Assembly (NCBI GenBank): GCA_002104905.1 | Contig: MCFE01000813.1 | Coordinates: 1-33,771, forward strand | From: Basidiobolus meristosporus CBS 931.73 | Taxonomy: Eukaryota > Fungi > Basidiobolomycota | Length of the DNA: 33,771 bases | Direction: 5' to 3' | Shown: one piece after another, positions 3,102-25,008 of the stretch | Position numbering within the stretch: the first letter of the stretch is position 1 | How the letters are laid out: every line of letters starts with the position of its first letter | Position numbers and translations under genes: made by a program | The notes under the pieces: generated by a model | The model's input: the letters and a program-made list of their open reading frames with translations, nothing else | Database searches by the model: none | Told to the model about the DNA's origin: nothing

Positions 3102-3983
3102 ATGAAATTCTCAACATCCATCTCCGCTGGCCTAACTCTTGCTGCCGCTGTTTCGGCCTTGCCATTGAGCCTTCTCCAGCAGTAATGCCAAGAAGGGCAA
3201 AACACCGCTCTGAAGTGTCTCGATGAGCGTCAATCTGATGTGATGTACAGATGTGTCGATGGAAAGGTCGTCGACTATGCTTGTCCAGGGGAGCAAGTGT
3301 GCGTGATGTTCACAATGTGGGGATCCACCAGTGCAGCATGTGCCGAAAGACCCCCAGTCCCGGTAAACACAGCTAAGGCATCAACCCATACCAAGGTAGC
3401 CTCCACTAAGGCTGCGCCAACCACTACCCACGTTGAGACCACCGCCTCCCAGGTGGAGTCGACCACTGTGCACGTTGTTCCTACTACCACCCAAGCCAAG
3501 TCCACCACCACATCTGTGGCCCAAACTTCCACTCATGTCAAGCCCGTTTCCACCAAAGCCGAAGCCACTTCGACCACTGTTTCTGCTCGCGCAACCCCCA
3601 GTGCCACCCCCAAGCCAGCTGTCCACGCCCCTTGTGAATGCAGCCCCATTGACGAATCATCCCCCGTATACATGAACGATTTCCTCATTGCCTTCCAGAA
3701 TAATGGGTACTTCTGGGATGTTGCCTCGCGCAGCCAGGAGTCCGAGCATCGCTTTGAGTACAAGGGTCTGAATGCGGAGGGACAGAACTTCACCGCCATC
3801 ACCACCATTCAGCCTAACGAGCCAGTCGAGGGAGGACTCTCTGTGAGTGGTAAGCTTTATGAGTGCTTCAAGAACTCGGAGAAGACACCTGGCTGGAACA
3901 GCAACGCCCTCATTGCACCCAAGTGCTCACTGTATACTGATAACAAGCTCATTGCTAGCATGGAGCTCACCCCTAGCCAGTAA
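3102..3983 (+). pseudogene. Long-form 6-Cys (CBM19-like) module + S/T/P linker + unknown C-terminal domain, with in-frame nonsense codon
   Basis: ATG at 3102 (MKFSTSISAGLTLAAAVSALPLSLLQQ*CQEGQNTALKC...) is in frame with ORF 3240..3983. A single TAA at 3183-3185 (codon 28) sits where two subtype-A paralogs have TAC (QYC). Collinear with 18511..19248. No TATA box at the usual position. Confidence 0.85.
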
Positions 3984-4769
3984 AGCCTCGGCATTGTAGA
4001 ATAGTCCCCAAGTATATAGAACTGGAGTTTTCCAAGATATCAAGGCATCATCATGTTTGATACAGATATTTAGTAAAAAGCGAAATAGATCAAGCCAACA
4101 CAAGTCTCTTCATATGATTTTTATCTATTGAGCCAGCAATCGTAAATTTATGATTTCTTCTAGTAGAACATATGGGTTGTCGCGATGGCAGTAGTGGCGT
4201 GCCCATTTGGCTGAAATTACACAAATTTCTGAATAAAGGAGCTGGTCCTAAGCGGTGGCATTGGAAATATTGTAGACAGTCTTCCTTACATTTCTCAAGC
4301 TACATTCTTTGCTTGGCACTAAGTAGGTATACATACACAGTATACCTCATAGGGTGATAGGAAATATTCCGTTTCCGAACTCACCCTAGTTTATACACAC
4401 TCGGCCCATCTCATGGCCCGACAAAGAGCGAAGTATGGGATGTAGATTGCCCAGCTATCCAAACTAATCATGTGGGACGAATCCAAATGCTATATCCCTA
4501 CTGAGGCCAAGGAATAAAGCATGACTGCTCGTCCCAAAAACATCCACAAAGCCACTTCTAGCAGTATGGCAAAACAACCGCTTACGCGCCAACGATCCAT
4601 TGAAAAATATTATAGTCACCAACGATCCTCGGAAATGGCCGGTCCAACCGGACGGATTAGCAGTTAATGAATGCATATGTTCTGCACCAATACTGTTGCT
4701 TCCCATTCGTGATCATATTAGCCGGCAAGGATCTAAGACAATGAAGGCTCTATCGCTAATAATGTACCG

Positions 4770-4824
4770 AATCCCATTATGGTGATCACAAATATCTAAT
4801 ATCCGCGTTGCTATTTTGAGCCAT
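4770..4824. repeat. ~55-bp non-coding duplicated block, copy 1
   Basis: AATCCCATTATGGTGATCACAAATATCTAATATCCGCGTTGCTATTTTGAGCCAT; near-identical to 9205-9259. Confidence 0.9.
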
Positions 4825-5280
4825 TAATTCGGGGATTAACAAGAGGTGACGACTGATATTCTCAGATTCGAAATCAGAGATTTTTGTCGAGTTATTCGCA
4901 TAGAATCTGATGAGTCCCACGGAGCCATCACCAACATTTTTTTTTACGAATCCCGGAGCTGTTTTAGGCAAGTTAGTACGTGTCTACTATTCGTATCTCG
5001 GTGCAACAGTTTCGCATCCGTTCCGTACGTGTGCTCGGATACACTATCCATCTTAATGTCCTTTTTCAAGAGCATCCTTGGGATTTGCCTCTCTTCATTT
5101 GGCCGCCTCCTTAAAAAGCGATCCTTGGATTTGACGGCCCTTCACTCCGCCTGTGCTGTTTGGTCTTGGAAGTTCTAGATGCAGGAATCGGAATATCTAA
5201 ATGCGGATGTTCATATTTAGGCTGGAGATTGTTGACCATCGATTGATGGATGAGGAACGTGTGAAGAGTATATAATGCTA

Positions 5281-5288
5281 TATAAAAG
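5281..5288 (+). promoter_or_regulatory. TATA box
   Basis: TATAAAAG, 48 nt before ATG 5329. Confidence 0.65.
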
Positions 5289-5328
5289 ACCCAACAAGCC
5301 ATTGATATCTGTCATTACGCAACAAACA

Positions 5329-5607
5329 ATGAAGTTCTCAACATCCGTTTCCGCTGGCTTGTTTCTTGCCACTACCGCCCTGGCCTTACCATTCGAAAAC
5401 TTTCCGCAGTACTGCCAGGAGAACCTAGATACTGCTCTTCAATGCCTTTACGAGCATCATTCTGGGGTAATGTTCAAGTGTTCTGGTGGAAAAGTGCTTG
5501 ATTACTCATGCCCCGACGATGAAGTATGCGTGATGTTTACCGTTGGGTCATCTACTACCGCCGCATGCACCGAAAGATCTCCAGCACCAATGACTAGTGG
5601 CAACTGA
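5329..5607 (+). CDS. Small secreted 6-Cys protein, subtype A (92 aa), CBM19-like module
   Basis: The true start is the second Met of ORF 5275..5607 (AACAAACA-ATG). It has a 19-aa signal (…TALA/LP) and C-x9-C-x11-C-x9-C-x5-C-x12-C. AATAAA at 5748-5753. Confidence 0.92.
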   Translation: MKFSTSVSAGLFLATTALALPFENFPQYCQENLDTALQCLYEHHSGVMFKCSGGKVLDYSCPDDEVCVMFTVGSSTTAACTERSPAPMTSGN

Positions 5608-7909
5608 CTTAATACTCCATGGCATATTCCGATGGTCTGTCACGGCCAAACTTTGTACATACACCACCGGCATATACAATTATTATTTGCTAGAGTAAGA
5701 ATATTATCCCTTCATTGCTAATGAAATAGATATTTACAACCTAAAACAATAAACGAACTCAACCACTTTATCTTAAAACCCTCACCTTGGATAGATTTGC
5801 TAGGGAAATGCCATGGCAATTGTGGTCGTCGACTAAGATTGCTGTTTATTTTCTTTACGCTTGACAGACTCAGAGATGTAGTCACCACTCACAATCCCAT
5901 ATGATGGAAGCCCCGTTGTAGAACTTCACTTTTGTACACCTTTGATGGATGCGTTAGGCACAGTTCTTGAACACTTTATGGTGATCTCCAGATATCTTCC
6001 AGGGTGTGGTAATCTATAGTCCTATGAATGAGAGAGGACTCTACTCTTACAAGTATTCTACGCAGTATTTCGTAAACCCGTGCACTTTTCTGGAAATACA
6101 ATTTAACCATGCCAGTGTGTTTACATAGAGTCACCGGTAGCCACTCGTAGCAGGTACAAATGGACACAGTTTTTTTCATTTGCTAAATATACGAAAAGCA
6201 GGATATCGTTTTATCACCTACCCACTCACCCTTGATTAAAGCACAGTAGATGGCATATGGATTTACAGGTCTTTCCAACCCATTGGCCCAAGTAATTCAT
6301 GGTATCTTATTGGCACATCCGTGATATATGGCACCATGTTTGCCAAGACTCCATATCGGAGGAAGAGGGCACACCTAATCTACAATATTAAGGGTGCTTC
6401 GAAGATTTGTCATATGGTCATGGGTTCAAATATCTTCAAAAAAGAATGCAGGAATACCTATAACGCTCTAAGATATAGTTTCCATGTAGGGAAGAGCGAT
6501 AAGCGAGATAGGGGTATTTTTTTCACGAGATTTTGCACGGCTCAAACGCCCAAGTGCATTTGACGTGTTTTTTCAGTCTGCGTTTACCATCTTCAGAAAG
6601 CGAGCGGTTGTCTCTGAAGCCTAAGAGATAGACCATAAATAAGTAGGCTAGCGATTAGTGGTGGATGTACAGCATAACCACTCATTGAGACAAATAAGCA
6701 GAGAAATACCAACGCCCGAATCACGCTAGTCCTGATAAGGATCCACCGATTTTGGTTAAATTGCTGTAGCTTTGGTCATTTTGTTTACCATGCTTGTATC
6801 GTCCACCCCAAATTTCTCTGAATTTACTTCGCAACTAGATGCTCACACCCGACGTACTATTCAGCTAAATCTAGCGCGTTGATCACAGTTTCTATAGATA
6901 AACCAGAATGCGCATAGTGTATGGCAACATCGGATACATGCCATGTATGTGTTCTGGTGGGGTGTGTATCAAGTGAATCTGGTTATTCCTAAAGAAATGC
7001 TGATAAGGTTTGATTGGGATCAGCATTGTGAGGCATTTTAGCTGCGCCGGATTTTTGTGATCACGATTATGCTCAGAAAAATTAGTACTGATACTCCCCC
7101 ATAAATGGATCAAATACCCCCTCATATTATTCACTATTAATGTGTAATCGAAATGCACAATAAATGAATGCAAAAGATCATTTCCTGCATGGCGCATTTG
7201 TTGCCAAGGAGCTACCACGATAATCAGTTAATAGCGGTCCAACCAGAATAGGTGGCATCGATATCCATCTATAGGAATCTCACGAAGATTTTGTGATGTT
7301 CCGCTTTGCCATACTGGGCTATATAATTTGGGGAATGTCGAGTGATCTTGTCTATTTTGATCTTTCGGCGGGACAATCTGATTCTCGAGATTTCTCTGGA
7401 GAAGAACCCCCCACAGAAGAGACTATACTATTCATAGAAATACTGCAGATTTCGGGTCTTTTTCCTAGTATGGGTACTGGCGGCTTTTTTTCATCCCCTT
7501 ATGTAGTATTATTGCATTAATAATTGTCTCAACGAGTGAGCAGCTGTCTCAGGTAGTTGAAAGATACACCATAAATGTCCCCAACTTGGAGTTGGTGACC
7601 GCATTGAGCGGACTAATATATTTGGAATGCAAACAAGGAAACACCGGTGCCGATAAGGTTCCAATGCCTTTCAACTAGTTGCTGCAGCATTGATCGTCGT
7701 TTCAGCCTATGCTTTGATTGGGATATTGGGTGAATCAACACCCCCAAATTTAACCTAGTTAATGTGGTCAGGATTTGGCAACAAGGACTGAGTTCATTGT
7801 GAAGGGAGGGGACCTAAACAACCCTGCGAAGATTGCGACTATTGCGTTCGTTGATTTCCCGACACCAATGGGAGTTGACCTACCGTAGGTGGAAGGCTAA
7901 ATTTAGGGA

Positions 7910-7939
7910 GATGATTGCATCGATCATTATCTTGAAACC
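7910..7939 (+). promoter_or_regulatory. Conserved ~30-bp GAT-rich upstream element (copy before 8179)
   Basis: GATGATTGCATCGATCATTATCTTGAAACC. Confidence 0.55.
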
Positions 7940-8130
7940 ACATTTGCTACGGAAGAACCAGTATGCACACATACGGTAAGACAGCGTAATGCCAGAGTAG
8001 AGCATTCCTAGGAGACGGTTCCATTTGTGTTGTTCTCCCATATTATCAATTATAGGTATCGAATGTTATCTGATGACCGTACAGAGCATTGAGTTGGTGA
8101 GGAAAGAAATGGTATTTTGGAATGAAAATG

Positions 8131-8138
8131 TATAAATA
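8131..8138 (+). promoter_or_regulatory. TATA box
   Basis: TATAAATA, 48 nt before ATG 8179. Confidence 0.65.
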
Positions 8139-8178
8139 TCCTGCGAGCATAACCATATCTGATACCATTCAACAAACA

Positions 8179-8472
8179 ATGAAGTTCGCAACATCCATTT
8201 CCGCTAGCTTGATTCTTGCCACTACCATCCTAGCCATGCCATTCGAAAACTTTCCGCAGTTCTGCCAGGAGAACCTAGATACTGCTCTTCATTGCATCTA
8301 TGAGCGTCACTCTGGGGTAATGTTCAAATGTTCTGGTGGAAAAGTGCTTGACTACTCATGCCCCGATGATGAAGTATGCGTGATGTTCACCGTTGGGTCA
8401 TCTACTACCGCCGCATGCACCGAAAGATCTCCAGCACCAGCAAGTGCTTATAATTCACTCATTGCTGTATAG
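8179..8472 (+). CDS. Small secreted 6-Cys protein, subtype A (97 aa), CBM19-like module
   Basis: Starts at MKFATS within ORF 8122..8472. The core is nearly identical to 5329, with a 5-aa C-terminal extension. AATAAA at 8590-8595. Confidence 0.92.
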   Translation: MKFATSISASLILATTILAMPFENFPQFCQENLDTALHCIYERHSGVMFKCSGGKVLDYSCPDDEVCVMFTVGSSTTAACTERSPAPASAYNSLIAV

Positions 8473-8505
8473 CATACTCCGCTGCTTACTAATGGACAAA
8501 CCCTG

Positions 8506-8519
8506 TATATATATATATA
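8506..8519. repeat. (TA)7 microsatellite in the 3' UTR of 8179
   Basis: TATATATATATATA; the homologous position in the 5329 3' UTR is TACATACACC. Confidence 0.9.
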
Positions 8520-8733
8520 ACTAATATCTTCTACAACGCGAGTATCTTCCCTTCGTTGCTAATGTCATCGACGTTTAACAATCTTACACAATAAATCAAT
8601 ACTATCATATCATCTTGCCAAGATCCTCTTTTTGGGTATATCTGCTGGAGAAGTGCTATGGTTATTGTGACTCGAAAACCAAAGTATTTATACATCTCAT
8701 AATACCTTGCTTGTACTTAATAGATGTGTGCAT

Positions 8734-8848
8734 CCAGGAGAGTCTGGGTACTGCTCTGCAATACCTCGATGTATATCACTGTGCCTTCAACCCTCCGGTG
8801 CTAGAAGCATTGTTCATATCTCGACGACAAGATGAACACAGCATATGC
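8734..8848 (+). pseudogene. Decayed internal remnant of the 6-Cys gene family (tenth copy)
   Basis: 8734-8783 matches the 5329 CDS at 36 of 50 nt by manual alignment. It translates QESLGTALQYLDVYH versus QENLDTALQCLYEHH. Weaker similarity continues to ~8848. No signal peptide; Cys lost. Confidence 0.65.
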
Positions 8849-9204
8849 TGTAATAACCTCTGTATTAGTGGGCTGATAACGGATACTTCAGTAATGGCCA
8901 TTCATTTAGATACACCCATTGCAAGCAAACTATTCATTGCTAAATATGTACCAAATCAGAGCCAATCTATCAATTTCTTGTATGAGTACACGAATTCTTG
9001 CGGCAGCATGTATGACAAGATAATAGTACAAACACTTAGGGAAAATCAGGGAAATCATGAATCATCGACATTTGCTACATTTTATTACCACGGAACGCGT
9101 ATAATCCGCGGCAATTCCCTTGTTTTCCATTCATGTGTATTTTAAAATGAATTACCTGGTAAAGATCTACGATATGAAAGCTGTGTCGTGCAAATATTGG
9201 ATCA

Positions 9205-9259
9205 AATCCCATTATGGTGACCACAAATATCTAATATCCGCGTTGCCATTCTGAGCCAT
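9205..9259. repeat. ~55-bp non-coding duplicated block, copy 2
   Basis: AATCCCATTATGGTGACCACAAATATCTAATATCCGCGTTGCCATTCTGAGCCAT. Confidence 0.9.
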
Positions 9260-10201
9260 AGAATTTGAGAAATGTTTGCCCCACTTTCTGCTGCGGTAAG
9301 GTCACTCGAGATTTTCTACGGAGCGATTTCACGAGGAAACAGAAGAGCATGTACTCACCGGAAGATTGTTTCTTTATTAGTAATAAAGGATGCATAGCCA
9401 AGATAAGCAACATGTTTGTTGTTTTTTCCACATTCACCACACAGTCGCTTTCAATAACAGATTGCATTTTTGTGCTGGATTGGAACGTATTCCATATGTA
9501 GTCACTGTTGGGTTACTGCACTCTTATCTACAATAATAGTACTCCAAGGTGCTTGTCCACCTTCCAAAAGATTTCAAGCAGTAGGCTCATGATTGGGCAT
9601 TTTTCATGGGCTTTTTCTGAGCTCAGAGATTACGGGCTAGTCAGCAAACTGTGAAATACTATTGACCTCGATCTTTTTTCCAAGCGCTCTTTCTTCAACA
9701 TACCCCATTGTATGTAACCTCCTATCAGGAAATGGCTGCTCAACTTAATTGAAGGAAGCGTATGTTTGGAGATTCTAATGATCTGGACCCACTATGGATG
9801 GAAATAAGCTTTGATAAAGACATTAACTTCATCAGACAACCGGCTTTTCACAAGCATCTTGTATTCAACATATCTCCAGTTGCTACTCTACTCGCCAATC
9901 AAGATGGAGCATTTGATACTGATCGGAGAGAACACCGGTACTGGCTGTGGCATCAATTGTTATCTGGACATCGTTTCTCTGATGGTTGCAAAGCGTAGTA
10001 TGGTTCTCCGTATTAGGCCTATTCTATTCACCGGACAGCATGGCTAATGCCGATCGTGGTGAAACCTTTGGAAATAATGGCATTGATGGATACATTCAAC
10101 CTTCTCTCATATTGGTGTCACCACCGGGTAAAGTTGACTTAAAAATCTCACCAACCAATCGGGTTGAAAAGTGCATATTTCCCAGAATCGAATTTAATGC
10201 T

Positions 10202-10231
10202 GATGATCGCATCGGTGGTGATCTCGATGCG
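10202..10231 (+). promoter_or_regulatory. Degenerate copy of the GAT-rich upstream element (before 10625)
   Basis: GATGATCGCATCGGTGGTGATCTCGATGCG; same offset (~420 nt) as the copies before 12206 and 16610. Confidence 0.4.
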
Positions 10232-10552
10232 GTATGGAAGACATGTGGATCATGGTGGTACATATACGGTTTCCTGGTATGCAGCTCCGAGTGAATCCAG
10301 CACAGAAGTCTATTATGGTCGAGATACCAATATTATTTTCGACCGACTACCCGAAATGAAGTAGTGATGCCGATTTTGGTCGGGGTTTCGCGTTTGCGTA
10401 CTTGACGCCACCACCTATCAAATCCGTTTTTCTACCAGGTAAAATGGACGTGCTCCAGATTTGCCAAGATTTGCAACTGTAATGCAACTGGCGGTCGAGA
10501 GCCATGGCTCACCGGAGTAAGAGATAATTTGCTAATTGTTTGAATTTGAAGG

Positions 10553-10560
10553 TATAAGTA
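10553..10560 (+). promoter_or_regulatory. TATA-like box
   Basis: TATAAGTA, 72 nt before ATG 10625. Confidence 0.5.
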
Positions 10561-10624
10561 TCTTACGCTACTCCCATCAAGATTCAATAAGCTATCACTA
10601 GCATACCTGACAACACTACAAACA

Positions 10625-10903
10625 ATGAAGTTCACCACATCGATCTCCGCTGGCTTGATTTTCGCCACCACCATTCTGGCCCTACCATTCGAAAACTTTC
10701 CACAGTACTGCCAGGAGAACCAGGACACTTCTCTCCAATGCCTCTATGAGCATCACTCCGGTGTAATGTTCAAGTGTTCCGGTGGAGAGGTGCTTGACTT
10801 TTCATGCCCTGGCGATCAAGTGTGTGTTATGTATACCGTTGGCTCATCTACTACCGCAGCATGTGGCGAAAGGTCCCTGGCTCCAGCAAACTCTGGCAAT
10901 TAG
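10625..10903 (+). CDS. Small secreted 6-Cys protein, subtype A (92 aa), CBM19-like module
   Basis: MKFTTSISAGLIFATTILALPFENFPQYC...; same Cys spacing. ACAATAAA with AATAAA at 11047-11052. Confidence 0.93.
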   Translation: MKFTTSISAGLIFATTILALPFENFPQYCQENQDTSLQCLYEHHSGVMFKCSGGEVLDFSCPGDQVCVMYTVGSSTTAACGERSLAPANSGN

Positions 10904-11792
10904 ATCGCCTCTTGAATTGCCAGCAATGGCCAAACATTGTAAATACACCTATAATATGCACAACTAAGTTGTAGTCATCACTTGATATTTGATGTCAGCG
11001 AATCAGCCAATATTGATATTACATGTAATATGTTACAGTCATGAACAATAAATGCGCATTAACCCATCAATTTCATGAGAATTTCACCCACGGGACCGTG
11101 GAATTTCCAAAATACAAGCATTTTCAATCACAGTACACTTGGCCCAGGAAATTTGGGGACATAGCGTCTATCACCGATAAAAAGGATTTGCAATGTCCAT
11201 TCATATGTAAAGGTCGATACCGGTGATACCAGTACATGAAGGAAAGATTGGCTTCAACTCTCTCCCCCACTGGCTAAGAGGGTGCTGTAACATTCGGATC
11301 CATTTGTGGGAAGCAGATTAGTGTGATATCGACATTCTGTGTGTAAGATGATGATGCTCGATCCTGTGCCCATTGACTAAATGTTCAACCGCGAAGCGTC
11401 AATATACATCACTGAAATCGTCATATGGCAGGATTTCCATTTCCTTTTTGATTTGGTCTCCTCCTCATCAAGAGATGATATTCCATATACGAATTATGCA
11501 CAAAGCCATGGATGGATGGAAATTCACACCATCGAACTATTGGCCATGAATTACTATTCAGGTGCTGATAGAGACTGATTGCTTTGGTCGCTTTACTAAT
11601 CCGGACAGTGGGAGTTTTACCATGCACTGATTATGGCAAGTTTCGTGTATTTTGAGGTTGAGGCATTCATATGATTAATATCATGTCGGCATCTACTGTA
11701 TTGTGTAGTTCATTTACTTTTTCACACGCCAATCAAAATCCACATGGTGGTCATGTTTGAAGAGCCCCAATTCTCAAACCAAATCTAGTGGT

Positions 11793-11822
11793 TCTGATCA
11801 CATCGATCGTTATCTTGATACC
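11793..11822 (+). promoter_or_regulatory. Conserved GAT-rich upstream element (before 12206)
   Basis: TCTGATCACATCGATCGTTATCTTGATACC. Confidence 0.55.
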
Positions 11823-12205
11823 ACAATTAAGCTCGATAAATCAGACTCCTAAAGGTGCTACCGAGGAATTTCATAAATGCCGGGGTCTGCAATGTGTTCA
11901 TTGGATTTGCAAGAGATTCCCTTAGGCCGAAGAGCATTGCCCGTCCGCCCAGAACAAAACATTAACACCGACCACAATGGAACATTTGTCCATGAAGCCA
12001 GTTCATCTCAGTTTAGTGCAGTTGTTGGGTAAAGCCACCACATATGATCCTGTCAAATTAGTAAAGAGTTGGAAATACGCTATTATCGACAACCAAGGGC
12101 CCTAAACGGTTAGAGAAATGAACGATTTGTTGATGTTGGGAACATGGAGGTACAAATACCATACAACACCGCTAACAACCACCATCAAACAACCCACAAC
12201 AAACA

Positions 12206-12480
12206 ATGAAGTTCGCTACCTCCTTGGCCGGCTTGACCCTTACTACTTCCGCCCTTGCCTTGCTCTGGACGAATGGTGCGCAGGAAAGCCAGACACCGCT
12301 CTTCAGTGCGTCGATGAGTATCACTCTGGGGTAATGTGGAGATGCCAAGGTGGAAAGATGGTGGACTACTCCTGTTTCGAAGACCAAGTGTGTGTGAAGT
12401 TCACATGGCAATCGGTTACCAGTGCCACATGTGCTCAACTCCCTTCCACTCCCAGTGGTGAAGGATCTGGCTCCAACTAA
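12206..12480 (+). pseudogene. Subtype B 6-Cys gene with 1-nt deletion frameshift
   Basis: ATG at 12206. TTGCTCTGGAC here versus TTGCCTCTGGAC in the 13394 paralog: one C is missing at ~12263, giving a stop at 12332-12334 after 42 codons. The rest of the module is intact in ORF 12118..12480. The TATA box is altered to TACAAATA (12151-12158). Confidence 0.85.
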
Positions 12481-13044
12481 TAGCAAACTGGTTGGTGCTA
12501 TCAATGTAGATACAGATAAAAATACGCAACAAATCAATATTCAGATCGATCGTTGATGATCTTTGCACAGTGTGTGTGGACGAGAACAGCATAGTCCTTT
12601 AGATGATCTTCGAGTATCTTTTGGAGTACGCTGAACCATAGGTACTGGTATGTTAAAATATAAAAACTATCTGGTGACTGGTGACTTATAGATCAGGGTT
12701 TCCGTCTAGTATGAGACATGTGGGAACCGTAGAACATGTCTCAAGTTGACTAGACAGTACTGTTATCTTGCGTAGCGGCAAGCGTGGTCGTCAGCTATGT
12801 TACACCAATTTTGTGCCAGGTATACAATATTGAAGCAATGGAGGAGTAGTAAGAAATCTGTGACACCAGTTTCAATGGAATCTTTACTCCCTCAGCTCAC
12901 CCAAAGTTCTACACCTTCAGGCCAAGCTGTGGCTGTTCAGCGAATGATAGATCGATAAAGATGCTTTGGTCGACGGGATCTGCAATTGTTGTGGCCCACT
13001 AAGGCATCGCAAATCTTGCAAATAGCTTTCCAATGAGAGTTTAT

Positions 13045-13074
13045 CCGAGTCTCTTAGATCGCTATCTTGATACC
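13045..13074 (+). promoter_or_regulatory. Conserved GAT-rich upstream element, 3' half conserved (before 13394)
   Basis: CCGAGTCTCTTAGATCGCTATCTTGATACC. Confidence 0.55.
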
Positions 13075-13338
13075 GCATGGAATGAATATTTTGGTGGAAT
13101 AGAGCTGGTGTATGATTTTTCTGGAACACCCCTCTGCGGATATTCATAAAAGCCATGGCTAGGAAAATGACTATTTGATATCCCAAATGGTACCTGTGTC
13201 AGCAATGCTAATGCCAGTAATGACCATCTATCCAGAACTATTAACACCAATAGGATTTGAAACCACACCTGTTAATTCTAGCCGAGACTTCACATCACTG
13301 TAGAAACGAATGAGTCATTGATACTGGGAGCACGAAGG

Positions 13339-13346
13339 TATAAATA
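13339..13346 (+). promoter_or_regulatory. TATA box
   Basis: TATAAATA, 55 nt before ATG 13394. Confidence 0.7.
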
Positions 13347-13393
13347 CCGTACAACACCGTCAGCAACCACCATCAAACAACCCACAACAAACA

Positions 13394-13672
13394 ATGAAGT
13401 TCGCTACCTCCTTCTTCGCCGGCCTGACCCTTGCTGCCTCGGCTCTTGCCTTGCCTCTGGACAAATGGTGTGCAGGAAAGCCAGACACCGCTCTTCAGTG
13501 TATTGATGAGTATCACTCCGGCGTAATGTGGAGATGTCAAGGCGGAAAGATGGTGGACTACTCCTGCTTCGAAAACCAAGTGTGTGTGATGTTCACCTGG
13601 CAATCGGTTACCAGCGCCTCGTGCTTTGAACTCCCTCCCACCCCCAGTGATGAAGACTCTGATTCAAACTAG
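13394..13672 (+). CDS. Small secreted 6-Cys protein, subtype B (92 aa, three Trp), CBM19-like module
   Basis: Signal peptide MKFATSFFAGLTLAASALA; same Cys spacing; acidic tail. AATAAA at 13722-13727. Confidence 0.94.
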   Translation: MKFATSFFAGLTLAASALALPLDKWCAGKPDTALQCIDEYHSGVMWRCQGGKMVDYSCFENQVCVMFTWQSVTSASCFELPPTPSDEDSDSN

Positions 13673-14909
13673 GAGTAGCTCTGTTCGTTGCTACCAATGT
13701 AGATATATAGCATCAGTGCACAATAAATGTAATTCAAACATGATCTCTCTCGTGGTGCTCACCAAAAACCATGCTTTGTTGGCCGGAGGAAGCGGTAGTA
13801 GTGACTTGACAAATGACTATATATGTCTCGCCGGATGGGTACAGTTGATCCGTCAGTTTAATAGATTTCTCACTGGGTACAAAGCCACAGCTAGGCATTA
13901 GCCAGGGGTACATACCAGAACGGTTGATGATCACATGCCCGAATTCATGGTGGTTGTATCAAGTTTCACAGCCAGTAGATTGGTTACACTTGCTTAAGGC
14001 ATGTTGACAGCTTATCAACACTAGCATTACCTGAAAGTCATCATCCATGCAATCACTGCCAATTGAAGTGTTTGCCATTAACATCACAAAATCTAAGTGT
14101 CAGCCACACAAAGTGCATATGATCCGCATAACTTCATGGCGATTGGCAAATGATGGCCATGTTGTCGATACATTCCAAATAAAGGCACACTAATATTCCA
14201 GGTATTTGGCTTCCTAGACAGATTTCCAATTATGGTTCGTCAGTGCGGTCTGCTTGGGTTCAAGTATAGCTATGAAGGATATATCTTCATTAATAATGTT
14301 TGTTGACCCCATTGCAATAATGTTGAGTTTAAATGAACCACCTAGCAGGAGCTCCTGAAATATTCCATTTTTCAACCCACCCACAATTTCATACATCAAG
14401 GCCGGCATTTGCCTGGAAGACAGTGGGGGATGAACTGAGGCGGTTACAGTCTTACTTGACTCAGGAATCCGCGTTGTTCGTGCCCCCACTAACTCAATGC
14501 AAATCCCCCAGCCAGTAAGCCAATGTGAGTTTATCCGTTATAGCATAAAGCACCATATTGTTGCCGTATTTGGTGGTAGCTTAGGGTGGCACACGTATGA
14601 TTAAGTGGCACGATGGTAGTGTAAAGTGTTTCTGGAACGCCGAGGATATTCACAGCAGTCAGGGCTAGAATCATGCTTATTCGATTATCCAAACAGCAAT
14701 TAGGATGCCCATTTCAAGATCAAGTCTGATCGACCGCGCTGGCCAAAGCATCATTACCAATCGAGTTGAAGCGTCCTATATGCGTTACTTCAATCATCAT
14801 TGAGGGCTGTGCTAATTGGCAAGAATTTGAAATCCTACCCGCTAATGCTGGTCGAGAACACCATACCATTGTAGGAACAAATGAGTCATTGATACTGGGA
14901 ACATGGAGG

Positions 14910-14917
14910 TATAAATA
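14910..14917 (+). promoter_or_regulatory. TATA box
   Basis: TATAAATA, 55 nt before ATG 14965. Confidence 0.7.
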
Positions 14918-14964
14918 CCATACAACACCGCTAACAACTACCATCAAACAACCCACAACAAACA

Positions 14965-15243
14965 ATGAAGTTCGCTACCTCCTTCTTCGCCGGCCTGACC
15001 CTTGCTGCCTCCGCTCTTGCCTTGCCTTTGGACGAATGGTGCGCAGGAAAGCCAGACACCGCTCTTCAGTGCGTCGATGAGTATCACTCTGGGGTAATGT
15101 GGAGATGTCAAGGCGGAAAGATGGTGGACTACTCTTGCTTCGAAGACCAAGTGTGTGTGAAGTTCACATGGCAATCGGTTACCAGTGCCGCATGTGCTCA
15201 GCTCCCACCCACTCCCAGCGGTGATAACTCCGGCTCAAACTAG
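14965..15243 (+). CDS. Small secreted 6-Cys protein, subtype B (92 aa)
   Basis: Differs from 16610 by one residue (GDNSGSN vs GDDSGSN). AATAAA at 15293-15298. Confidence 0.94.
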   Translation: MKFATSFFAGLTLAASALALPLDEWCAGKPDTALQCVDEYHSGVMWRCQGGKMVDYSCFEDQVCVKFTWQSVTSAACAQLPPTPSGDNSGSN

Positions 15244-16188
15244 AAGCAGCTTTACCCATTGCTACACATGTAGATATATAGTATCAGTGCACAATAAATG
15301 AAATCCACGCAGCATTTTTGAACTGCTAATCTGGGATTTACTGATTCAGAATTGATGAGAGCAGGCTTTTGACTGTACCGGCAACGGAAAACGAAAGATT
15401 AAGAAATCCGTAATAACAAGATGCATGAGATATCCCATATAAACTACCCGGATAGTGTACTGAGCTTGCATCATATACGAGTGGTAGCGACCCTTTTTGA
15501 TCCGAGAATTTTACGAGACATTAGCAATATTATTCTAGCAAAAAACACTCAATCAACGAAATTTCCCGCCACATGTTTCACATTTAAAAAAGATGTTCTG
15601 AACAATTTCCTTTGGCAGTTGCTCCTGGGGCACAATATCTTCATTACCAATGCAGGTAACCAGAGTAGATATCAATCTAGGTAGCATCGTCCGGAAAGTA
15701 TCATCGAGTGAATCATTGCCAAAGAGGCGTGCATTGCGTGCATTGCAAGAGCTAGCGCAAGCCACTCGAAATGCCAAACCAAACCTAGCCCATAGCAATT
15801 GGTTACCGGCACCGTATGGATCATGGTCATGTTATTAATGGAGCCTAAATTAGGTGGCATTTCGTCTCTCGGATATTGCGTATTCACCGGGCTGTGCAAT
15901 TTGGGTGGGTTCATGCATGGCCTTGTTGATCTATTGTGATTCCGATATTGTGCACCAATGTCAGGATTGGCAGTATATCCCGCAAGTGGCATTAATACCC
16001 ATAGAATCTTCCATCCTCTGATCACTGTTGTTTTCACACACTCAGGCCAACTTTCTGTCCTTGAAAAGCTACAGATTCCATGTGGATGGCTGGGTCATTC
16101 TAGTCCGTCATTCAAACGCTATTTTTGGATCCTGTGAGCCACTAAAGCATCGTAAATCTCACAGAAAGCTCACCAAGAAGAATCCTTC

Positions 16189-16218
16189 CGTGATTGCGTC
16201 GATCGCTATCTTGATACC
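16189..16218 (+). promoter_or_regulatory. Conserved GAT-rich upstream element (before 16610)
   Basis: CGTGATTGCGTCGATCGCTATCTTGATACC. Confidence 0.55.
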
Positions 16219-16554
16219 GCATTTGTTGTATATTCGGGTGAAATAATGCTGGTGGATGGCATTCTTGGAACACCAGCACGCGGATATTTCTAAAAGCCAT
16301 AGTCAGGAAAATGCTTATTAGATATTCCAAATAGCAACTGTGTCAGAAATCCCAATGTTAACATTGATAGCACTCAGTTCTGTAGTTCACAGAATAAATT
16401 CCAACCTCTTCTAGGCCGATACTTCTATTGGGCAAAGCCATCTTCAACGGTTGGGCTATATTGGTGAGAATTTGAGACTCTGCCCACTGATGCTGGTCGA
16501 GAGCACCATACCATTGTAGGAACAAATGAGTCATTGATACTGGGAACATGGAGG

Positions 16555-16562
16555 TATAAATA
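16555..16562 (+). promoter_or_regulatory. TATA box
   Basis: TATAAATA, 55 nt before ATG 16610. Confidence 0.7.
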
Positions 16563-16609
16563 CCATACAACACCGCTAACAACTACCATCAAACAACCCA
16601 CAACAAACA

Positions 16610-16888
16610 ATGAAGTTCGCTACCTCCTTCTTCGCCGGCCTGACCCTTGCTGCCTCCGCTCTTGCCTTGCCTTTGGACGAATGGTGCGCAGGAAAGCCAG
16701 ACACCGCTCTTCAGTGCGTCGATGAGTATCACTCTGGGGTAATGTGGAGATGCCAAGGTGGAAAGATGGTGGACTACTCCTGTTTCGAAGACCAAGTGTG
16801 TGTGAAGTTCACATGGCAATCGGTTACCAGTGCCGCATGTGCTCAGCTCCCACCCACTCCCAGCGGTGATGACTCCGGTTCAAACTAA
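16610..16888 (+). CDS. Small secreted 6-Cys protein, subtype B (92 aa)
   Basis: Signal peptide + 6-Cys module. AATAAA at 16938-16943. Confidence 0.94.
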   Translation: MKFATSFFAGLTLAASALALPLDEWCAGKPDTALQCVDEYHSGVMWRCQGGKMVDYSCFEDQVCVKFTWQSVTSAACAQLPPTPSGDDSGSN

Positions 16889-17998
16889 AAGTAGCTTTGA
16901 CCGCTGCTACCAATGTAAGTACATAGCATAAACGCACAATAAACGAAATCCATAAAACATTCTTGCACTGCTCATCTGGGATTTGCTAGTAGTGAACGTC
17001 ATTAACCGATAAGGGATTTGATAATGAGCAGTGATGGAGATAGGTATTCCATTTTAATATTCTTGAGGTAATCCCCAATATCCTCTGTACTCTTTTCGAA
17101 TGATGTGAATCACCTGATAGAAAGCATAGGGACTTAACGGGAGTAAAGCTCCATTGTTGAATTCTTTGCTCAACTCATATACAGAGATTTAATGATAAGC
17201 GACTCGGTATGTATTGAGTATCAATCCGGCATTGGCAAAATTTACGAATCCAACCCTCTTCGGAGGAATAGTTCAACATGTTTGATATCGGTCAGATAAG
17301 CCTACAGTAGTGCATCACACAAACCAAGCAGTAAATTCAACCTAAACCATTGGCATCGAAATCACATTTGAAACATCATTCCGTGGGATTCAAGGGGTTG
17401 ACCTCGGTAGAAAACGGCATATTGTATGTGAGTGCGATATCGGCCGGATTGTTTGAGGGATGTCGTTCACTGGCCGATCAACAGTAGGTACCGAATTGAG
17501 CCTCGCTATACGCCACCCGTCTTTCTAATTCTCCCCACCATATTTGGTCTCAGAAAAAAAGCCCACCAAGATAAACCATAAATGAATCGGGTGAGGTTAA
17601 TGAATATCGACGATTACGCGTCGATATGATCTGGCCATTGACCAAGAATGGGAACAAGCAAGACAGTGCCACTCTCTTTACCATACTTGGACTGATAACG
17701 CTATACTTTGTACTCATTGCTGTCGCTTTGGTCGATTTACTAACCGGGCCAGTCCAAGCTTTGCTATAGTGATGCCACCTGATCATTCACCACGAAACCT
17801 GCCGTGTTTCATGCAGCCGACATTTCTCGAAGCATTCACTTCTCCTAGCCCAACACCTAGCTATGTGCAGGGATGATATCTAACGGTGTGCGTTGGCTCC
17901 ACAGGAAAAGATACCAACCAACCGGGTGTAAATCTTCTCTCTTCACCCAGGATCCAGGTTGGTTGAAGGAAAAAATCATTTATGCCAAATCTTGAGTC

Positions 17999-18028
17999 GA
18001 TGATCTCATCGATCGCTATCTTGATGCC
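17999..18028 (+). promoter_or_regulatory. Conserved GAT-rich upstream element (before 18511)
   Basis: GATGATCTCATCGATCGCTATCTTGATGCC; includes the inverted repeat CGATGA-TC-TCATCG at 17998-18011. Confidence 0.55.
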
Positions 18029-18433
18029 CTACGCGTTTGGTGCAGATGAACCGCCGAGACTCGTATATGGTGAAGTAGTATAATGGCGGTGTATGTTTTC
18101 CCCGGGACGCTGCATCAAAGATATTCGAGGCTGGGAAGTGATATGCTTATTGGGATCCCAAAATGGTAACCCTGACGGAAATGCCATCAATAACATTGAC
18201 CGACTGCCCAGATCCAAGTTTCCATGCCAATCGTAACGGAACGACCGGAAATGTGGTACCCTTTCTGGCATTGATGGATTCCAGTTCCCCTTCGATTGGC
18301 GTTTTAATTGGACAAAGCCACGTTTAAAAATCGCGCTAAATTTGGGAGAATTTGGAACTATACAGTTGCTGTTTGTCGAGAGCACTAGTTTACTGAAGAA
18401 AGTAATGATTTGCTGATGGTTTAGGGCACAACG

Positions 18434-18441
18434 TATATATA
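18434..18441 (+). promoter_or_regulatory. TATA box
   Basis: TATATATA, 77 nt before ATG 18511. Confidence 0.55.
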
Positions 18442-18510
18442 CCTCGCATGGCTACCGATTGCCACCAACAGAATCTTATTCGCAGACCATACTAGCAACA
18501 AGATATCACT

Positions 18511-19248
18511 ATGAAATTTACCACCTCCATTTCCGCTTGTTTGACATTCGCTGCTGTTGCTTTGGCCTTGCCACATCAAAACCTTCAGAACCATTGCCAG
18601 GAAATGCAAAATACCGCCCTTCATTGCCTTGAGGAACGTCAATCTGGCTTGATGTACAGATGCACCGGTGGAAAGGTGGTTGATTATACTTGTCCAGGAG
18701 ACCAAGTTTGTGTGATGTTTACATTCGGGTCGTCTACTAGTGCAGCTTGCGCGGACAGACCTCCGGAGTCAGTGAACAAGTCTGAACACTCATCTTCATC
18801 ATCGGTATACACCAACTCTACTTCCGTGGCTGCGCCAACCTCTATTCATACCCAATCCCTCCCTCGTGCCACCCCCAAGCCAACTGTTCATTCACCATGT
18901 GAATGCACTCCTGTTGAGCCATCATCTGTCACATACATGAACGATTTCCTCATTGCCTATCAAAATCAAGGATATTTCTGGGATGTTGCCGCACGCAACC
19001 CTGACTCTGTTCATCGCTTCGAGTACGAAGGAGTTAACGCCGAGGGAGAGAGCTTCACAGCTGCCACCATCATTCAACCAAAGGAGTATATTGAGGGAGA
19101 TCTTCCCATGGGTGCCAAACTTTATGACTGCTTCAAGAAGTCAGAGCTTGTACCCAGCTGGAATAGTGATGCTGTCATCGCCTCGAAGTGCTCTCTGTAT
19201 GATGACAATAAGCTCATTGCCAGCATGGAATTTACCGCCAGTCAGTAA
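18511..19248 (+). CDS. Long-form secreted protein (245 aa): 6-Cys CBM19-like module + S/T/P linker + unknown ~120-aa 4-Cys domain
   Basis: Signal peptide, same Cys spacing and a Ser/Thr-rich linker. The C-terminal domain (HSPCEC...MNDFLIAYQNQGYFWDVA...KCSLYDDNKLIASMEFTASQ) is collinear with the 3102 locus. Confidence 0.93.
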   Translation: MKFTTSISACLTFAAVALALPHQNLQNHCQEMQNTALHCLEERQSGLMYRCTGGKVVDYTCPGDQVCVMFTFGSSTSAACADRPPESVNKSEHSSSSSVYTNSTSVAAPTSIHTQSLPRATPKPTVHSPCECTPVEPSSVTYMNDFLIAYQNQGYFWDVAARNPDSVHRFEYEGVNAEGESFTAATIIQPKEYIEGDLPMGAKLYDCFKKSELVPSWNSDAVIASKCSLYDDNKLIASMEFTASQ

Positions 19249-21924
19249 ATCCCAAAGTGTAAAATATTTCCCGAGTATATAGAAGGGGTATTGGCTGAAA
19301 CGGCGCAACCCCTCTTTCTAAGTAATAATGTGTATAAGAAATCATAATAAATGCCAACTACCTCAAAAACCCAGTTTATCATCTATTTACGTGTTGCGGT
19401 GGTAAAACGAGTTCGTATTGCAATACGCATGGAACAAAATTTCCACTGCTGCGATGCAAAGATGGGTATTTCAAGTGACTAGGGGGCATGTATTCAAATG
19501 AACATTCAATGATCGAAAGGTCACCAATATCGGCACATTCAACATTGTAAGTATTCAAGTGTAACAACTATTTGATATGATTCGATTTGACTGCATGTAC
19601 ACAATACAAAGGGTCAGATCAATATACCATTAATGAGATAATGTGCTCTCATGATGGCCAAAAGGACCGCAACCGTTACATAGCCATTCGAAATTCATCT
19701 GCAGTCCATTAGCTCGTTCGCTTGGACAAATCCCAAAAAATTTATTCCTTAAATCAGCAGATTTCACTTTCCTGATTCTCTACTAATATTGGGCAAGGTC
19801 ACTAGAGTAATAGAAAATACCCAGGCGGTATATACTCGCAAGTAAGTTGAATTGGCAACTTGGGTGTTTGGAGCAATTAGAAATGTGGTCCTTCACATAT
19901 GTATTGGTGTATTGAGGGGAGATGAGCTATTTGTACTTCCAGAAATTCATAAAAAATATTAACATGCACTGACACTCTAGCAAATTACCCATAGTATAAT
20001 TCATTACCAATGAAGAATTAGGACCAATTCCATTATTTGCGGTAACAAAGAAATTTATGAAACTTCCAAAGACACTTGGTTTTAGAGCAATGAGGGTAGA
20101 CTGCTACTTGATCCAATCCTAAAGTGGATCAAATTCATCTACTAAACCCCATCACAATGTTCACCGGATACTGAGAATGGGCCACCAGTTGGGAGGACCA
20201 GGCGCAGATTTGGAATCGAAACAAATGTTAGCCCAATCCCTGGGATAAGTCGGGTATTCCGATGATACAACCCATCAGCAACGTTACTTCCCATCCAATC
20301 AGATCCACTATTCACCGGTAGGATTTCGTGAATGGCTTCATTGCCCTTTGATGTGGTAGGGTATGGTCAGTGGTTGATCACTTCGTGTATGAATCATTCC
20401 GGCTGACACCACCATTGGACAGACGGTCTGGCTGGTATCGACTACATGTTGTATACCGAGAATACACTATCAACGATTGGATCCTCCTCATGTAGGTTTC
20501 ATGAGTAGCCAATCGCATATGGTAATTACCTTTTGGCGTCCATCTCCGATCCCTCAGTACCTCGCATCACGATTAATTCAAACCAACCGCATCAGCGGGG
20601 TTGACCCAAAACGAGGTGATCGATTTCCTTTTGACCTTTTAGAATACCTTGGTACATACTCATGAAACCGGCGGCAACCCAAGTTGAGTCCCCCATGAAA
20701 CTTCGCTGGACCATATTACGCACCGCTCCACAGACTCCGCCGCGCAGCCATTGTATCGTAGACATCCGAGAGGTGACCAAACCGGCGTCTGGACTCGATT
20801 GTTCTCGAGAGAATTGAGAGGGAGGTAGCTCTCTGATCGCATATCCTGCTGGCAACGTCCATCAAACCACCATTAAACCCACCCCACGCCTTACAAACCA
20901 GACCCCTTATCAACCGTGCTCACGAGTATGCACCCAAGTACCCGTGAAAAGAGAGAAACAAGTATGGTAAATCACCTACCAGCATCCGGAGGATTTGGGC
21001 ATTCCTTAGTGGATTTAAACGAAGTACTGATCGATCCAGTAGTGTTGATTCCATGGAATATTTCTACCGCGTTGAACGTGTGTAACTCTCACCTGCCTAT
21101 CAGAGATATCACCCAGCAAGCTTGCACAAAACACGTTGGTTCGGGCAATGCATGGGCAATTGGTGGACATCCAAGTTAATTCCACATAAGGAAGGAATGG
21201 TGGATTCATGCGTCAAGATCGTCTGCTCGCTGTACTGGTGGAGATCTGAGATAGGGTTGGGTTGGGGTGGTGATGCTTTATGCTTCGTGGTTAGCCTATT
21301 ATGTATAACCATCCGTAAGGGCCGCCCGGATTATTTCCTATGCAAGCGCCGCTCTGATTGCTGTCTTTCGAAAGGAACTTGGCTATTGCGTCCAAACAGT
21401 TGTACCTGTAGCCTGTCTACCAGAATGGCAGCCATAAGATCATTAATCTGACTATTGAGGGAGAGCCTAGTACCATATTTGGCTCAACCCAGATTCCGCG
21501 CTGCATCCTGCTTTGATTGGGTCATATTAGGGTAGGTGAGAACATGGTAGAAAGAAGGCCTTCTACTTCCGTTACTCTTCAGTGGAGCGCACTTTGCGGA
21601 TCAAGTTACCACATCACTCGGGATGTGCGAACTTGCCTACTTAACGAGGTCCTCTCGCCAACAACGAGATCCGTTTAGCGGGCAACATAAGTAGTGGGCG
21701 GAGATTGATATTCTCTTGGGTAATTGGGCACGCTAATCATGATCTCCAGCGGATTCATCAAGAATGGGAGCCACGGTGGTTGTTGAAACGAACACGCGGT
21801 TCAAATAAGAGAATATAGTGTTTCCAAACATGATTTATTTCCAGCTTTTTCTTACCAGAAGTGAAAGATCTACTAAATGAAATGCCCGATAGGTTTGCAT
21901 CCAGTGCTACGCTATTGAAGTGAT

Positions 21925-22524
21925 TTATCCTTGCAACTGGCAGGAAGTGACGCTGATATCAACGTGGTCTAGTCTAGAACCGAAGGTACGGGCGATTTGT
22001 TCGTAGTACTTCTTGTCTCCGACAAGAAGATCGATGTGGTTGTTTCCGAAGCTCCATCCCTTGTCATCAACACGGACACATCCGTTGTGAGTGGATCCGT
22101 TGGGCATCTTCAATCCCTTCAATTGGTTGACCATAACCTTGCTACCATATGGAAGATCGTTGGCTGAGATACTGATGAATGGCTTGAGAGAGTTACTTCT
22201 AGAGCCAAGGCCGTAAGGGTAACGCTTCTGATCAAGCGTCATGAAGCAGCTATAGCCGCTACCGCAGCCGCACGCAAGGTTGACGACCTTTCCGTTGTTC
22301 AAACGGGCAGTGCCCTCCATGCGAGCTGCCTCAGCAAACGATCTGGAGACCTTGGCAATGGTCTGTCCGGAGCAGGTACGGAGGTCGATACTCTTGGATC
22401 CAGAGTGGTCGCCCTCTTTAGCGATCCAGTAGAAAGTCATCTTCACCCTTTTGGCCATGACGGCAGTTTGGAAAAGGGTAACGTAGAGGAGGGTAATCAA
22501 GAGAAGTTTGTTGAGTACTTGCAT
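21925..22524 (-). CDS. Secreted 3D-domain (MltA-like double-psi beta-barrel) protein, 199 aa, copy 1
   Basis: ATG at 22524 (the ORF track starts 2 codons earlier at a TTG). Signal peptide, N-terminal TFYW strand and VDDKGWSFGNNHIDLLVG, matching the 3D motif D-x-G-x8-D. Six Cys. TATA at 22574-22581 (minus). Confidence 0.85.
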   Translation of the reverse strand: MQVLNKLLLITLLYVTLFQTAVMAKRVKMTFYWIAKEGDHSGSKSIDLRTCSGQTIAKVSRSFAEAARMEGTARLNNGKVVNLACGCGSGYSCFMTLDQKRYPYGLGSRSNSLKPFISISANDLPYGSKVMVNQLKGLKMPNGSTHNGCVRVDDKGWSFGNNHIDLLVGDKKYYEQIARTFGSRLDHVDISVTSCQLQG

Positions 22525-22684
22525 GGTCAAGTCGGCTATGGAGCAGATAGAGCATTAGCGACTCATGCTTATCTTTTTATATCCTCTCTCTACGGTCGAA
22601 GTTGAGCTCGTAGCAACAAAGATCTGATATCCATTTCGCTCGTTCCAGTCTTGAATCATACTATAAGGGGTTCCCTTATTCTTT

Positions 22685-22705
22685 GAGTCGGTCACCTACT
22701 ATATT
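22685..22705. promoter_or_regulatory. 21-bp non-coding motif shared upstream of both 3D genes, copy 1
   Basis: GAGTCGGTCACCTACTATATT; 20/21 identical to 24988-25008. Confidence 0.5.
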
Positions 22706-24278: not shown

Positions 24279-24878
24279 TTACCCTTGTAGCTTGCAAGAG
24301 GAGATGGAGATATCGACATATCTAAGCTTAGACCCGTAGTTGCGTGAGATTTGGTCGTAATACTTCTTGTCACCAACTAACAGATCAATGTGATTGTTGC
24401 CAAAGCTCCAGCCTTTATCGTCCACGCGAACACATCCATTGTGGGTGATGCCGTTGGGCATTTTCAATCCTTTCAATTGGTTCACCATAACCTTGCTACC
24501 ATATGGAAGATCGTTGGCTGAGATACTGATGAATGGCTTAAGTGCGTTGCTTCGGGAACCTAAACCAAATGGATACCGTTTGGGATCGAGTTCCATAAAG
24601 CAGTTGTAGCCGCTACCGCAGCTGCAAGCTAGGTTCACGATCTTTCCGTTATTCAGACGTGCAGTGCCTTCCATACGGGCTGCGTTGGCAAAGGACTTTG
24701 AAACCTTGGCGATGTTCTTTCCAGAGCAGGTGCGAAGATTGACATTCTTGGATCCAGAGTGATCGCTCTCCTTGGCGACCCAGTAGTAGGTCATCTTCAC
24801 CCTTTTTGCCATGACCGCTGTCTGGAAAAGGGTGATGTAAAGGAGAGTAATCAGGAGAAGCTTGTTGAGTACTTGCAT
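24279..24878 (-). CDS. Secreted 3D-domain (MltA-like) protein, 199 aa, copy 2
   Basis: About 85% identical to copy 1 (29 differences by manual count), same length and motifs. TATA at 24917-24925 (minus). Confidence 0.87.
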   Translation of the reverse strand: MQVLNKLLLITLLYITLFQTAVMAKRVKMTYYWVAKESDHSGSKNVNLRTCSGKNIAKVSKSFANAARMEGTARLNNGKIVNLACSCGSGYNCFMELDPKRYPFGLGSRSNALKPFISISANDLPYGSKVMVNQLKGLKMPNGITHNGCVRVDDKGWSFGNNHIDLLVGDKKYYDQISRNYGSKLRYVDISISSCKLQG

Positions 24879-24987
24879 GTTGAAGTGGATGGAGAGTAGT
24901 TATTCATTGACGCTGCTTATATATACTTTTGCTATGAAGCCTCCAGCCTTTTGAACATCGCTAGCACTTGAATCTGCCTTCCCCTTC

Positions 24988-25008
24988 GAGTCGGTCACCT
25001 TCTATATT
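24988..25008. promoter_or_regulatory. 21-bp shared upstream motif, copy 2
   Basis: GAGTCGGTCACCTTCTATATT. Confidence 0.5.

Follow-up and report, generated by a model that had tools for sequence, protein, structure and literature searches.

A complete scaffold of Basidiobolus meristosporus CBS 931.73, 33,771 nucleotides (nt) long, was analysed here (the window). Between positions 3102 and 19248 it carries a tandem array of nine paralogous genes for small proteins with secretion-type leaders. All nine genes encode the same six-cysteine module (module N), and the two genes at the ends of the array continue through a linker into a second, C-terminal domain (module C). We regard it as probable that these genes encode a lineage-restricted family of secreted proteins that bind glycans and combine two independent modules. 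Of these, module N is predicted to belong to the fold group of the carbohydrate-binding module (CBM) families 14 and 19, and module C is predicted to be similar to Y3, LDL, Gnk2 and KP4. The evidence consists of an invariant cysteine pattern, purifying selection on the coding sequences, the shuffling of the two modules within the genome and the predicted folds of both.

Organisation and conservation of the array

Searches with tblastn, using four family members as queries, found nine paralogues (L1–L9), all located on the + strand, with E-values between members ranging from 1e-17 to 1e-61. The start-to-start distance between neighbours is 1188–2850 nt. This is in agreement with the preliminary description of the scaffold, which had listed nine loci spaced by 1.2–2.9 kb, each with an invariant cysteine pattern after a 19-residue signal. 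The cysteine gaps 9, 11, 9, 5 and 12 are indeed kept in nine of nine copies, giving the pattern C-x9-C-x11-C-x9-C-x5-C-x12-C. All copies share the N-terminus MKF(A/S/T)(T/A)S...ALA, read as a typical signal peptide of 19 residues. Seven of the nine copies are intact, the number given previously, and the other two are accounted for by a stop codon in frame in L1 and by a frameshift in L5. The latter, located at about position 12260, places the signal part and the module in different frames. The fragments of L1 and L5 were treated separately throughout the analyses.

After removal of the signal peptide, the short forms are 73–78 amino acids (aa) long and have an isoelectric point (pI) of 4.1–4.6; for all products of the array, the range is 4.1–5.0. 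The earlier statement that the short mature forms are acidic proteins of about 73 aa, with nine Asp/Glu against four Lys/Arg in the copy starting at 14965 (L7), was exactly reproduced. A cationic defensin-like reading was rejected, since every product is acidic.

A tenth copy had also been proposed. Approximately 50 nt at positions 8734–8783 do lie in register with the part of the module between the first two cysteines (C1–C2), but the blastn E-values are only 6e-4 (with L2), 0.002 (with L4) and 0.028 (with L3). The assignment of this piece as a tenth, decayed copy is plausible but weak.

The tree and the repeat analysis divide the copies into three well-supported groups, namely subfamily A (L2–L4), subfamily B (L5–L8) and the long forms (L1 and L9). 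The two long forms sit at opposite ends of the array, with the seven short forms between them. The short forms end 11–16 residues past the sixth cysteine, at the position from which the long forms extend as a linker rich in Ser and Thr (together about 40%). As the stop falls at the linker position, the short forms look like truncated duplicates. No remnant of the C-terminal domain was found by tblastn 3′ of any short form; given this and the position of the stop, the assumption that each short form is only the first exon of a longer gene was discarded.

The ratio of nonsynonymous to synonymous substitution rates (dN/dS) was 0.05–0.47 in every pairwise comparison with a measurable dS, which indicates purifying selection on the coding sequences. 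The similarity from unit to unit comprises the gene with about 160 nt upstream and about 100 nt downstream, and the remaining spacer is unalignable. A TATA[AT]A box is located 48–77 nt before the ATG in six of the seven intact copies, the remaining one (L4) having TATAAG, and the TATA consensus is lost in the broken copies L1 and L5. Outside the gene units, two of the array spacers share a short direct repeat (4717–4824 and 9151–9259), which extends over about 110 nt at 82% and contains a core of 70 nt at 89%.

Positions 9930–25893 of the window align collinearly, in the spacers as well as in the genes, with the end of scaffold MCFE01000281.1 (L003 4551–19496, reversed) at 82–89% identity. The segment on that scaffold has a single A-type gene, three genes of the B type where the window has four, and an L9-like gene, and its downstream genes are also those of the window. 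This sister array is a diverged segmental duplicate or a homeologous segment rather than a near-identical allele.

Three sequencing runs were compared with both arrays. In runs X1 and X2, the depth is about 60 and even over genes and spacers alike; with such coverage of intergenic DNA, they behave as genomic DNA and are uninformative on expression. Both runs contain a second version of L9, in which 33 of 33 checked variant letters are those of the sister scaffold. In run X3, which comes from the same study and whose kind is not on record, contigs were obtained for the genic parts only and in the sister version only. A B-type gene is covered there to a depth of 991 and the L9-like gene to a depth of 115, and the spacers are not covered at all. 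This distribution resembles that of a transcriptome and gives a hint that the sister copies are strongly expressed. A search for RNA runs over positions 10000–19300 listed none.

Two of the public gene models look faulty. Model P0026 in the sister array (L003 10001–12585) fuses the start of a B-type gene with the L9-like gene over about 2 kb, and model P0010 excises the part of L6 (13394–13672) between the fifth and sixth cysteines as an intron. Copies L2–L4 seem to have no gene model, and for L4 no identical protein is present in the protein collection.

Sequence relationships and predicted folds of the two modules

Module N comprises about 60 residues with six invariant cysteines. The AlphaFold (AF2) model of L7, based on an alignment of 12 paralogues, features a short helix and two beta hairpins, with a predicted local distance difference test score (pLDDT) of 81–89 over residues 21–80. 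The best matches of this model in the PDB, obtained with Foldseek, were the human chitotriosidase CBM14 structures 5hbf and 6so0 (probability 0.98 and 0.89, respectively). Other matches include the effector Avr4 (6bn0 and 4z4a), tachycitin (1dqc) and mite allergens such as Der p 23, and, together with insect peritrophins, the CBM14/peritrophin-A proteins are the best matches among solved structures. The cluster matches in the AlphaFold database are mostly proteins named ‘chitin-binding type-2’ or ‘CBM family 19’ and chitinases, including Rhizopus chitinase 1. The neighbours in the ESM Atlas include Zoopagomycota proteins combining glycoside hydrolase family 18 (GH18) with CBM_19 (template modelling (TM) score 0.62) and arthropod CBM_14 proteins (TM 0.67). 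Predicted CBM19-bearing proteins gave TM values of 0.46–0.63, by query or by hit, and CBM14 models score alike; no solved CBM19 structure was found among the PDB matches of module N. By these comparisons, the predicted model has the CBM14 fold. The absolute fold scores are all low, as expected for a domain of 60 residues, and the agreement across methods is strong.

Word-indexed homologue searches with L9, L7 and the alignment of the C-terminal domain returned Basidiobolus proteins only, or nothing, and the PDB sequence-profile search with module N returned nothing relevant. An exhaustive search with a hidden Markov model (HMM), in which the alignment of the mature module was compared with 1.84 billion cluster representatives, found four Basidiobolus clusters followed by two Pfam-confirmed CBM_14 repeat proteins (E = 1.4e-11 and 2.8e-10, values summed over many weak repeats of 6–17 bits each). 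Beyond these, the search returned only FG-GAP, Sushi or other repeat noise, so that CBM14 proteins are the sole relatives outside Basidiobolus in it. Protein P0015, considered as a giant of CBM19 repeats, was rejected and is an FG-GAP protein. Comparison of the family alignment with ten Pfam-confirmed CBM14 repeats using hhalign gave a probability of 88% over only 25 columns. These columns represent the core hairpin between the third and fourth cysteines (C3–C4), where the CBM14/peritrophin-A motif ‘aromatic-x-C-x2-G-x6-C-P’ aligns with module N.

Residues 20–90 of the paralogue P0002 scored 14.6 bits (E = 0.033) over 21 residues with CBM_19 (PF03427) and 14.4 bits (E = 0.043) with CBM_14 (PF01607). 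Both matches lie on the C3–C5 stretch and are below the gathering scores of 20.1 and 22.1 bits, respectively. The Pfam scan of paralogues P0012 and P0011 gave no match. In UniProt, P0002 and P0012 bear the automatic name ‘CBM family 19 domain-containing’, which current Pfam confirms for neither.

We read these results as placing module N within the CBM14/19 fold group, in a diverged branch that is so far restricted to one lineage and is no closer to one of the two families than to the other. The label ‘CBM14/19-type’ is justified, and the label ‘CBM19’ is not, membership in CBM19 not being demonstrated. The preliminary description had proposed an enzyme-free, amplified CBM19-like family. Its secretion-type character, its amplification and the lack of an enzyme domain attached to module N in any copy were borne out, as was a predicted fold of the chitin-binding-module group; the assignment to CBM19 was not, as no window protein scanned matches Pfam CBM_19 and the sequence relatives outside Basidiobolus are CBM14 repeat proteins. 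In the fold comparisons, CBM14 structures and predicted CBM19 modules match about equally. Models of Zoopagomycota chitinases and of Rhizopus chitinase 1 are among the nearest folds, but, in contrast to the CBM19 of fungal GH18 chitinases, the array module is never joined to a chitinase and misses the PF03427 threshold.

Module C, the C-terminal domain of the long forms, has a length of about 115 residues; it starts with C-x-C and contains a single invariant pair of cysteines (C84 and C104). No Pfam match was obtained at E ≤ 1, the PDB sequence-profile search gave nothing relevant, and the databases contained no relatives outside Basidiobolus. The AlphaFold model, a confident one (pLDDT 87, predicted TM score (pTM) 0.82), consists of a strand, a long helix, a hairpin, a helix and a hairpin. 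In an unfiltered comparison with 48,161 PDB chains, the top seven were entries for Y3, LDL, Gnk2/DUF26 and KP4. The scores were 6.6 for Gnk2 with mannose, 6.1 for the Lyophyllum decastes alpha-galactosyl lectin LDL, 5.9 and 5.6 for the DUF26 ectodomains of PDLP8 and PDLP5, 5.5 for Zt-KP4 and 4.4 for KP4. The predicted order of strand, helix, hairpin, helix and hairpin is that of the alpha-beta fold shared by Y3 (Coprinus comatus, 5v6i), LDL (4nds), Gnk2/DUF26 (4xre and 6grf) and KP4 (1kpt and 8acx). Module C has no sequence similarity to these proteins and no Pfam match, and it lacks the motif C-x8-C-x2-C of DUF26.

The two modules occur in the genome in several architectures, namely N alone, N-C, N-C-C (P0002) and C-C (P0003 and P0005). 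Such shuffling speaks for modules that function independently of each other. The genes for P0003 and P0005 (L001 10001–11008 and 14159–15166) stand in tandem and encode proteins of 335 aa, which feature a signal peptide, a C domain, a Ser/Thr linker and a second C domain, without the six-cysteine module. No report of a Y3/LDL/Gnk2-like fold fused to a chitin-binding-type module was met, no literature search having been aimed at that architecture.

The Avr4 proteins of Cladosporium fulvum and Pseudocercospora fuligena, whose structures are among the few PDB matches of module N, are likewise small, secreted and enzyme-free and contain one disulfide-rich module of the chitin-binding type. However, the array products have no detectable sequence similarity to Avr4, have other cysteine spacing and are acidic, and the array is amplified to nine or more tandem copies, some of them fused to a second, lectin-like domain. 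Basidiobolus is, moreover, a gut and dung fungus and not a plant pathogen. Stand-alone chitin-binding effectors are a known kind, from which the array family differs by its own sub-threshold cysteine pattern, by tandem amplification and by the Y3/LDL/Gnk2-like fusion.

Ligand, possible roles and competing explanations

In the mechanism that seems most likely, cleavage of the signal peptide would release acidic N-only proteins of 73 aa, which would bind as monovalent coats to chitin, be it that of the fungal wall itself or that of arthropods. As proposed for the comparison with Avr4, the coat would protect chitin from chitinases or mask it. The long forms would link chitin, by way of module C on a putatively O-glycosylated stalk, to a second glycan. 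Host and bacterial chitinases, as well as arthropod chitin, are plentiful in the guts of animals that feed on insects, so attachment to cuticle and shielding of the own wall would both be reasonable roles. Passage of Basidiobolus through the gut of amphibians and reptiles that eat insects has been described (PMC9391592).

Several results weigh against the explanation as a whole. The Pfam scan of window proteins covered L1 after its stop, L2–L4, L5 as an open reading frame (ORF) of 120 aa, L6–L9 and the mature parts. None of these matched CBM_19 or CBM_14 even at E ≤ 10, and no Pfam family was reached by any array protein of the window; the CBM_19 profile match to be expected from the preliminary description was thus not obtained, the one paralogue mentioned above staying at 14.6 against the 20.1 bits needed. 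The six cysteines of peritrophin-A are separated by a long first gap followed by gaps of x5-6, x9-19, x10-14 and x4-14. The spacing of module N in its nine copies is unlike this, and only C1, C3 and C4 align with CBM14 cysteines. Compared with CBM14, module N has an extra cysteine five residues past the C-P motif, and the aromatic stretch ‘C-D/N-W-P’ following the fifth CBM14 cysteine is missing. Because of the unusual spacing and the missing stretch, affinity for chitin is not assured. The alignments behind the two predicted models are shallow, with 12 and 8 close paralogues. The UniRef automatic name of the sister-array model P0026 is ‘Endo-1,3(4)-beta-glucanase 1 carbohydrate binding domain-containing’, and the ligand could accordingly be another wall glycan. 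Finally, none of runs X1–X3, nor the search for RNA runs, showed transcripts of the window's own copies.

The name of P0026 and the missing aromatic stretch also fit an explanation in which the folds are as described, but module N binds a different polysaccharide of the wall, for instance beta-1,3-glucan or chitosan, or else a glycoprotein, and the proteins would serve wall architecture or adhesion instead of coating chitin. In addition, PDLP5, the fold of which is matched by module C, bound none of the sugars tested (PMC6368629). We consider a ligand other than chitin possible but unlikely, as the named structural neighbours of module N are nearly all chitin binders, and P0026 has no match in current Pfam.

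A more far-reaching proposal, which seems to us distinctly unlikely, is that module N represents a new chitin-binding family within the CBM14/19 fold group, found in Basidiobolus only. Together with module C, it would make up a two-part system, in which the long forms would be bivalent chitin-docking lectins, possibly toxic like Y3 or KP4. The amplified short forms would occupy these sites in competition with them and so shield the wall of the producer in an insect-fed gut rich in chitinases.

Toxicity would be the main function if the array were an antagonistic arsenal. In that case, the long forms would be toxins of the KP4-like or lectin type, aimed by module N at the chitin of a competitor or prey, comparable to zymocin, and the short forms would act as antimicrobials in the manner of tachycitin or as competitors that protect the wall of the producer from the toxin. 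The matches of module C include KP4 and Zt-KP4, Y3 is described as cytotoxic, and the matches of module N include tachycitin and the antifungal protein PAFC. Docking of killer toxins on chitin is also known (10.1101/2024.10.25.620242). On the other hand, all products of the array are acidic, unlike most small antimicrobial proteins, the KP4 matches rank below the lectin matches in score, and no sequence similarity to toxin families was found in the Pfam, homologue and PDB profile searches, which makes an arsenal quite improbable. An origin from unrelated, fast-evolving, small cysteine-rich secreted proteins, with the likeness to CBM14/19 being a common small disulfide-rich beta arrangement, appears highly improbable in view of the agreement across methods, even with the low fold scores, the shallow model alignments and the presence of the FOLD-type effectors SIX4, SIX6 and SIX1 among the matches of module N.

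Stand-alone chitin-binding effectors of the Avr4 and LysM types have been described mostly in plant-pathogenic Dikarya. If the array does encode a secreted glycan-binding family with a CBM14/19-type module, the same strategy would have arisen independently in an early-diverging fungus of animal guts. Surveys with a strict cut-off, such as E < 1e-15 (PMC9391592), are expected to miss module N, which is too divergent for Pfam thresholds. The pairing of module N with a Y3/LDL/Gnk2-like domain provides a testable candidate for a bivalent lectin of wall or cuticle, and module C adds a fungal data point to the question of the relationship between plant DUF26 proteins and fungal lectins.

Feature coordinates and neighbouring genes

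The copies of the array and the other genes of the window are listed in Table 1.

Table 1. Array copies and neighbouring genes in the window; promoter positions are given relative to the ATG.
Feature	Coordinates	Strand	Details
L1, long form, broken	3102–3983	+	Signal 3102–3158; TAA 3183–3185; six-Cys module 3186–3359; Ser/Thr-rich linker ~90 aa; predicted C-terminal alpha/beta domain ~3615–3980; upstream without TATA consensus
L2, short form, subfamily A, intact, 92 aa	5329–5607	+	TATA-type boxes at -60 and -50
L3, short form, subfamily A, intact, 97 aa	8179–8472	+	TATA box at -48
Possible decayed subfamily A remnant (C1–C2)	8734–8783	+	~260 nt past L3; blastn
L4, short form, subfamily A, intact, 92 aa	10625–10903	+	Upstream variant box TATAAG
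L5, short form, subfamily B, broken	12206–12480	+	Signal part 12206–12262; module 12259–12480; without TATA consensus
L6, short form, subfamily B, intact, 92 aa	13394–13672	+	TATAAATA at -55
L7, short form, subfamily B, intact, 92 aa	14965–15243	+	AlphaFold-modelled copy; TATAAATA at -55
L8, short form, subfamily B, intact, 92 aa	16610–16888	+	Differs from L7 by one residue
L9, long form, intact, 245 aa	18511–19248	+	Signal 18511–18567; six-Cys module 18568–18765; Ser/Thr-rich linker 18766–18894; predicted alpha/beta domain 18895–19245; TATATATA at -77
Secreted-type protein, 201 aa	21925–22530	-	Faint Pfam 3D-domain match only (E = 0.2)
Secreted-type protein, 199 aa	24279–24878	-	Paralogue of the 201-aa protein
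DUF3472 protein	27943–28896	-	Pfam E = 2e-20
DUF3472 protein	29150–30127	+	Pfam E = 1e-39; signal-type N-terminus
Partial reverse-transcriptase ORF	31306–31749	-	LINE type
Partial reverse-transcriptase ORF	32479–33603	-	LINE type

The two paralogous secreted-type genes that follow the array have a syntenic copy as a pair on MCFE01000281.1. The next two genes form a divergent pair, at least one member of which, that on the + strand, encodes a protein with a signal-type N-terminus. The two partial ORFs of the long interspersed nuclear element (LINE) type have a near-identical C-terminal tail, match RVT_1 with E = 1.8e-11 and represent retroelement debris at the scaffold end.

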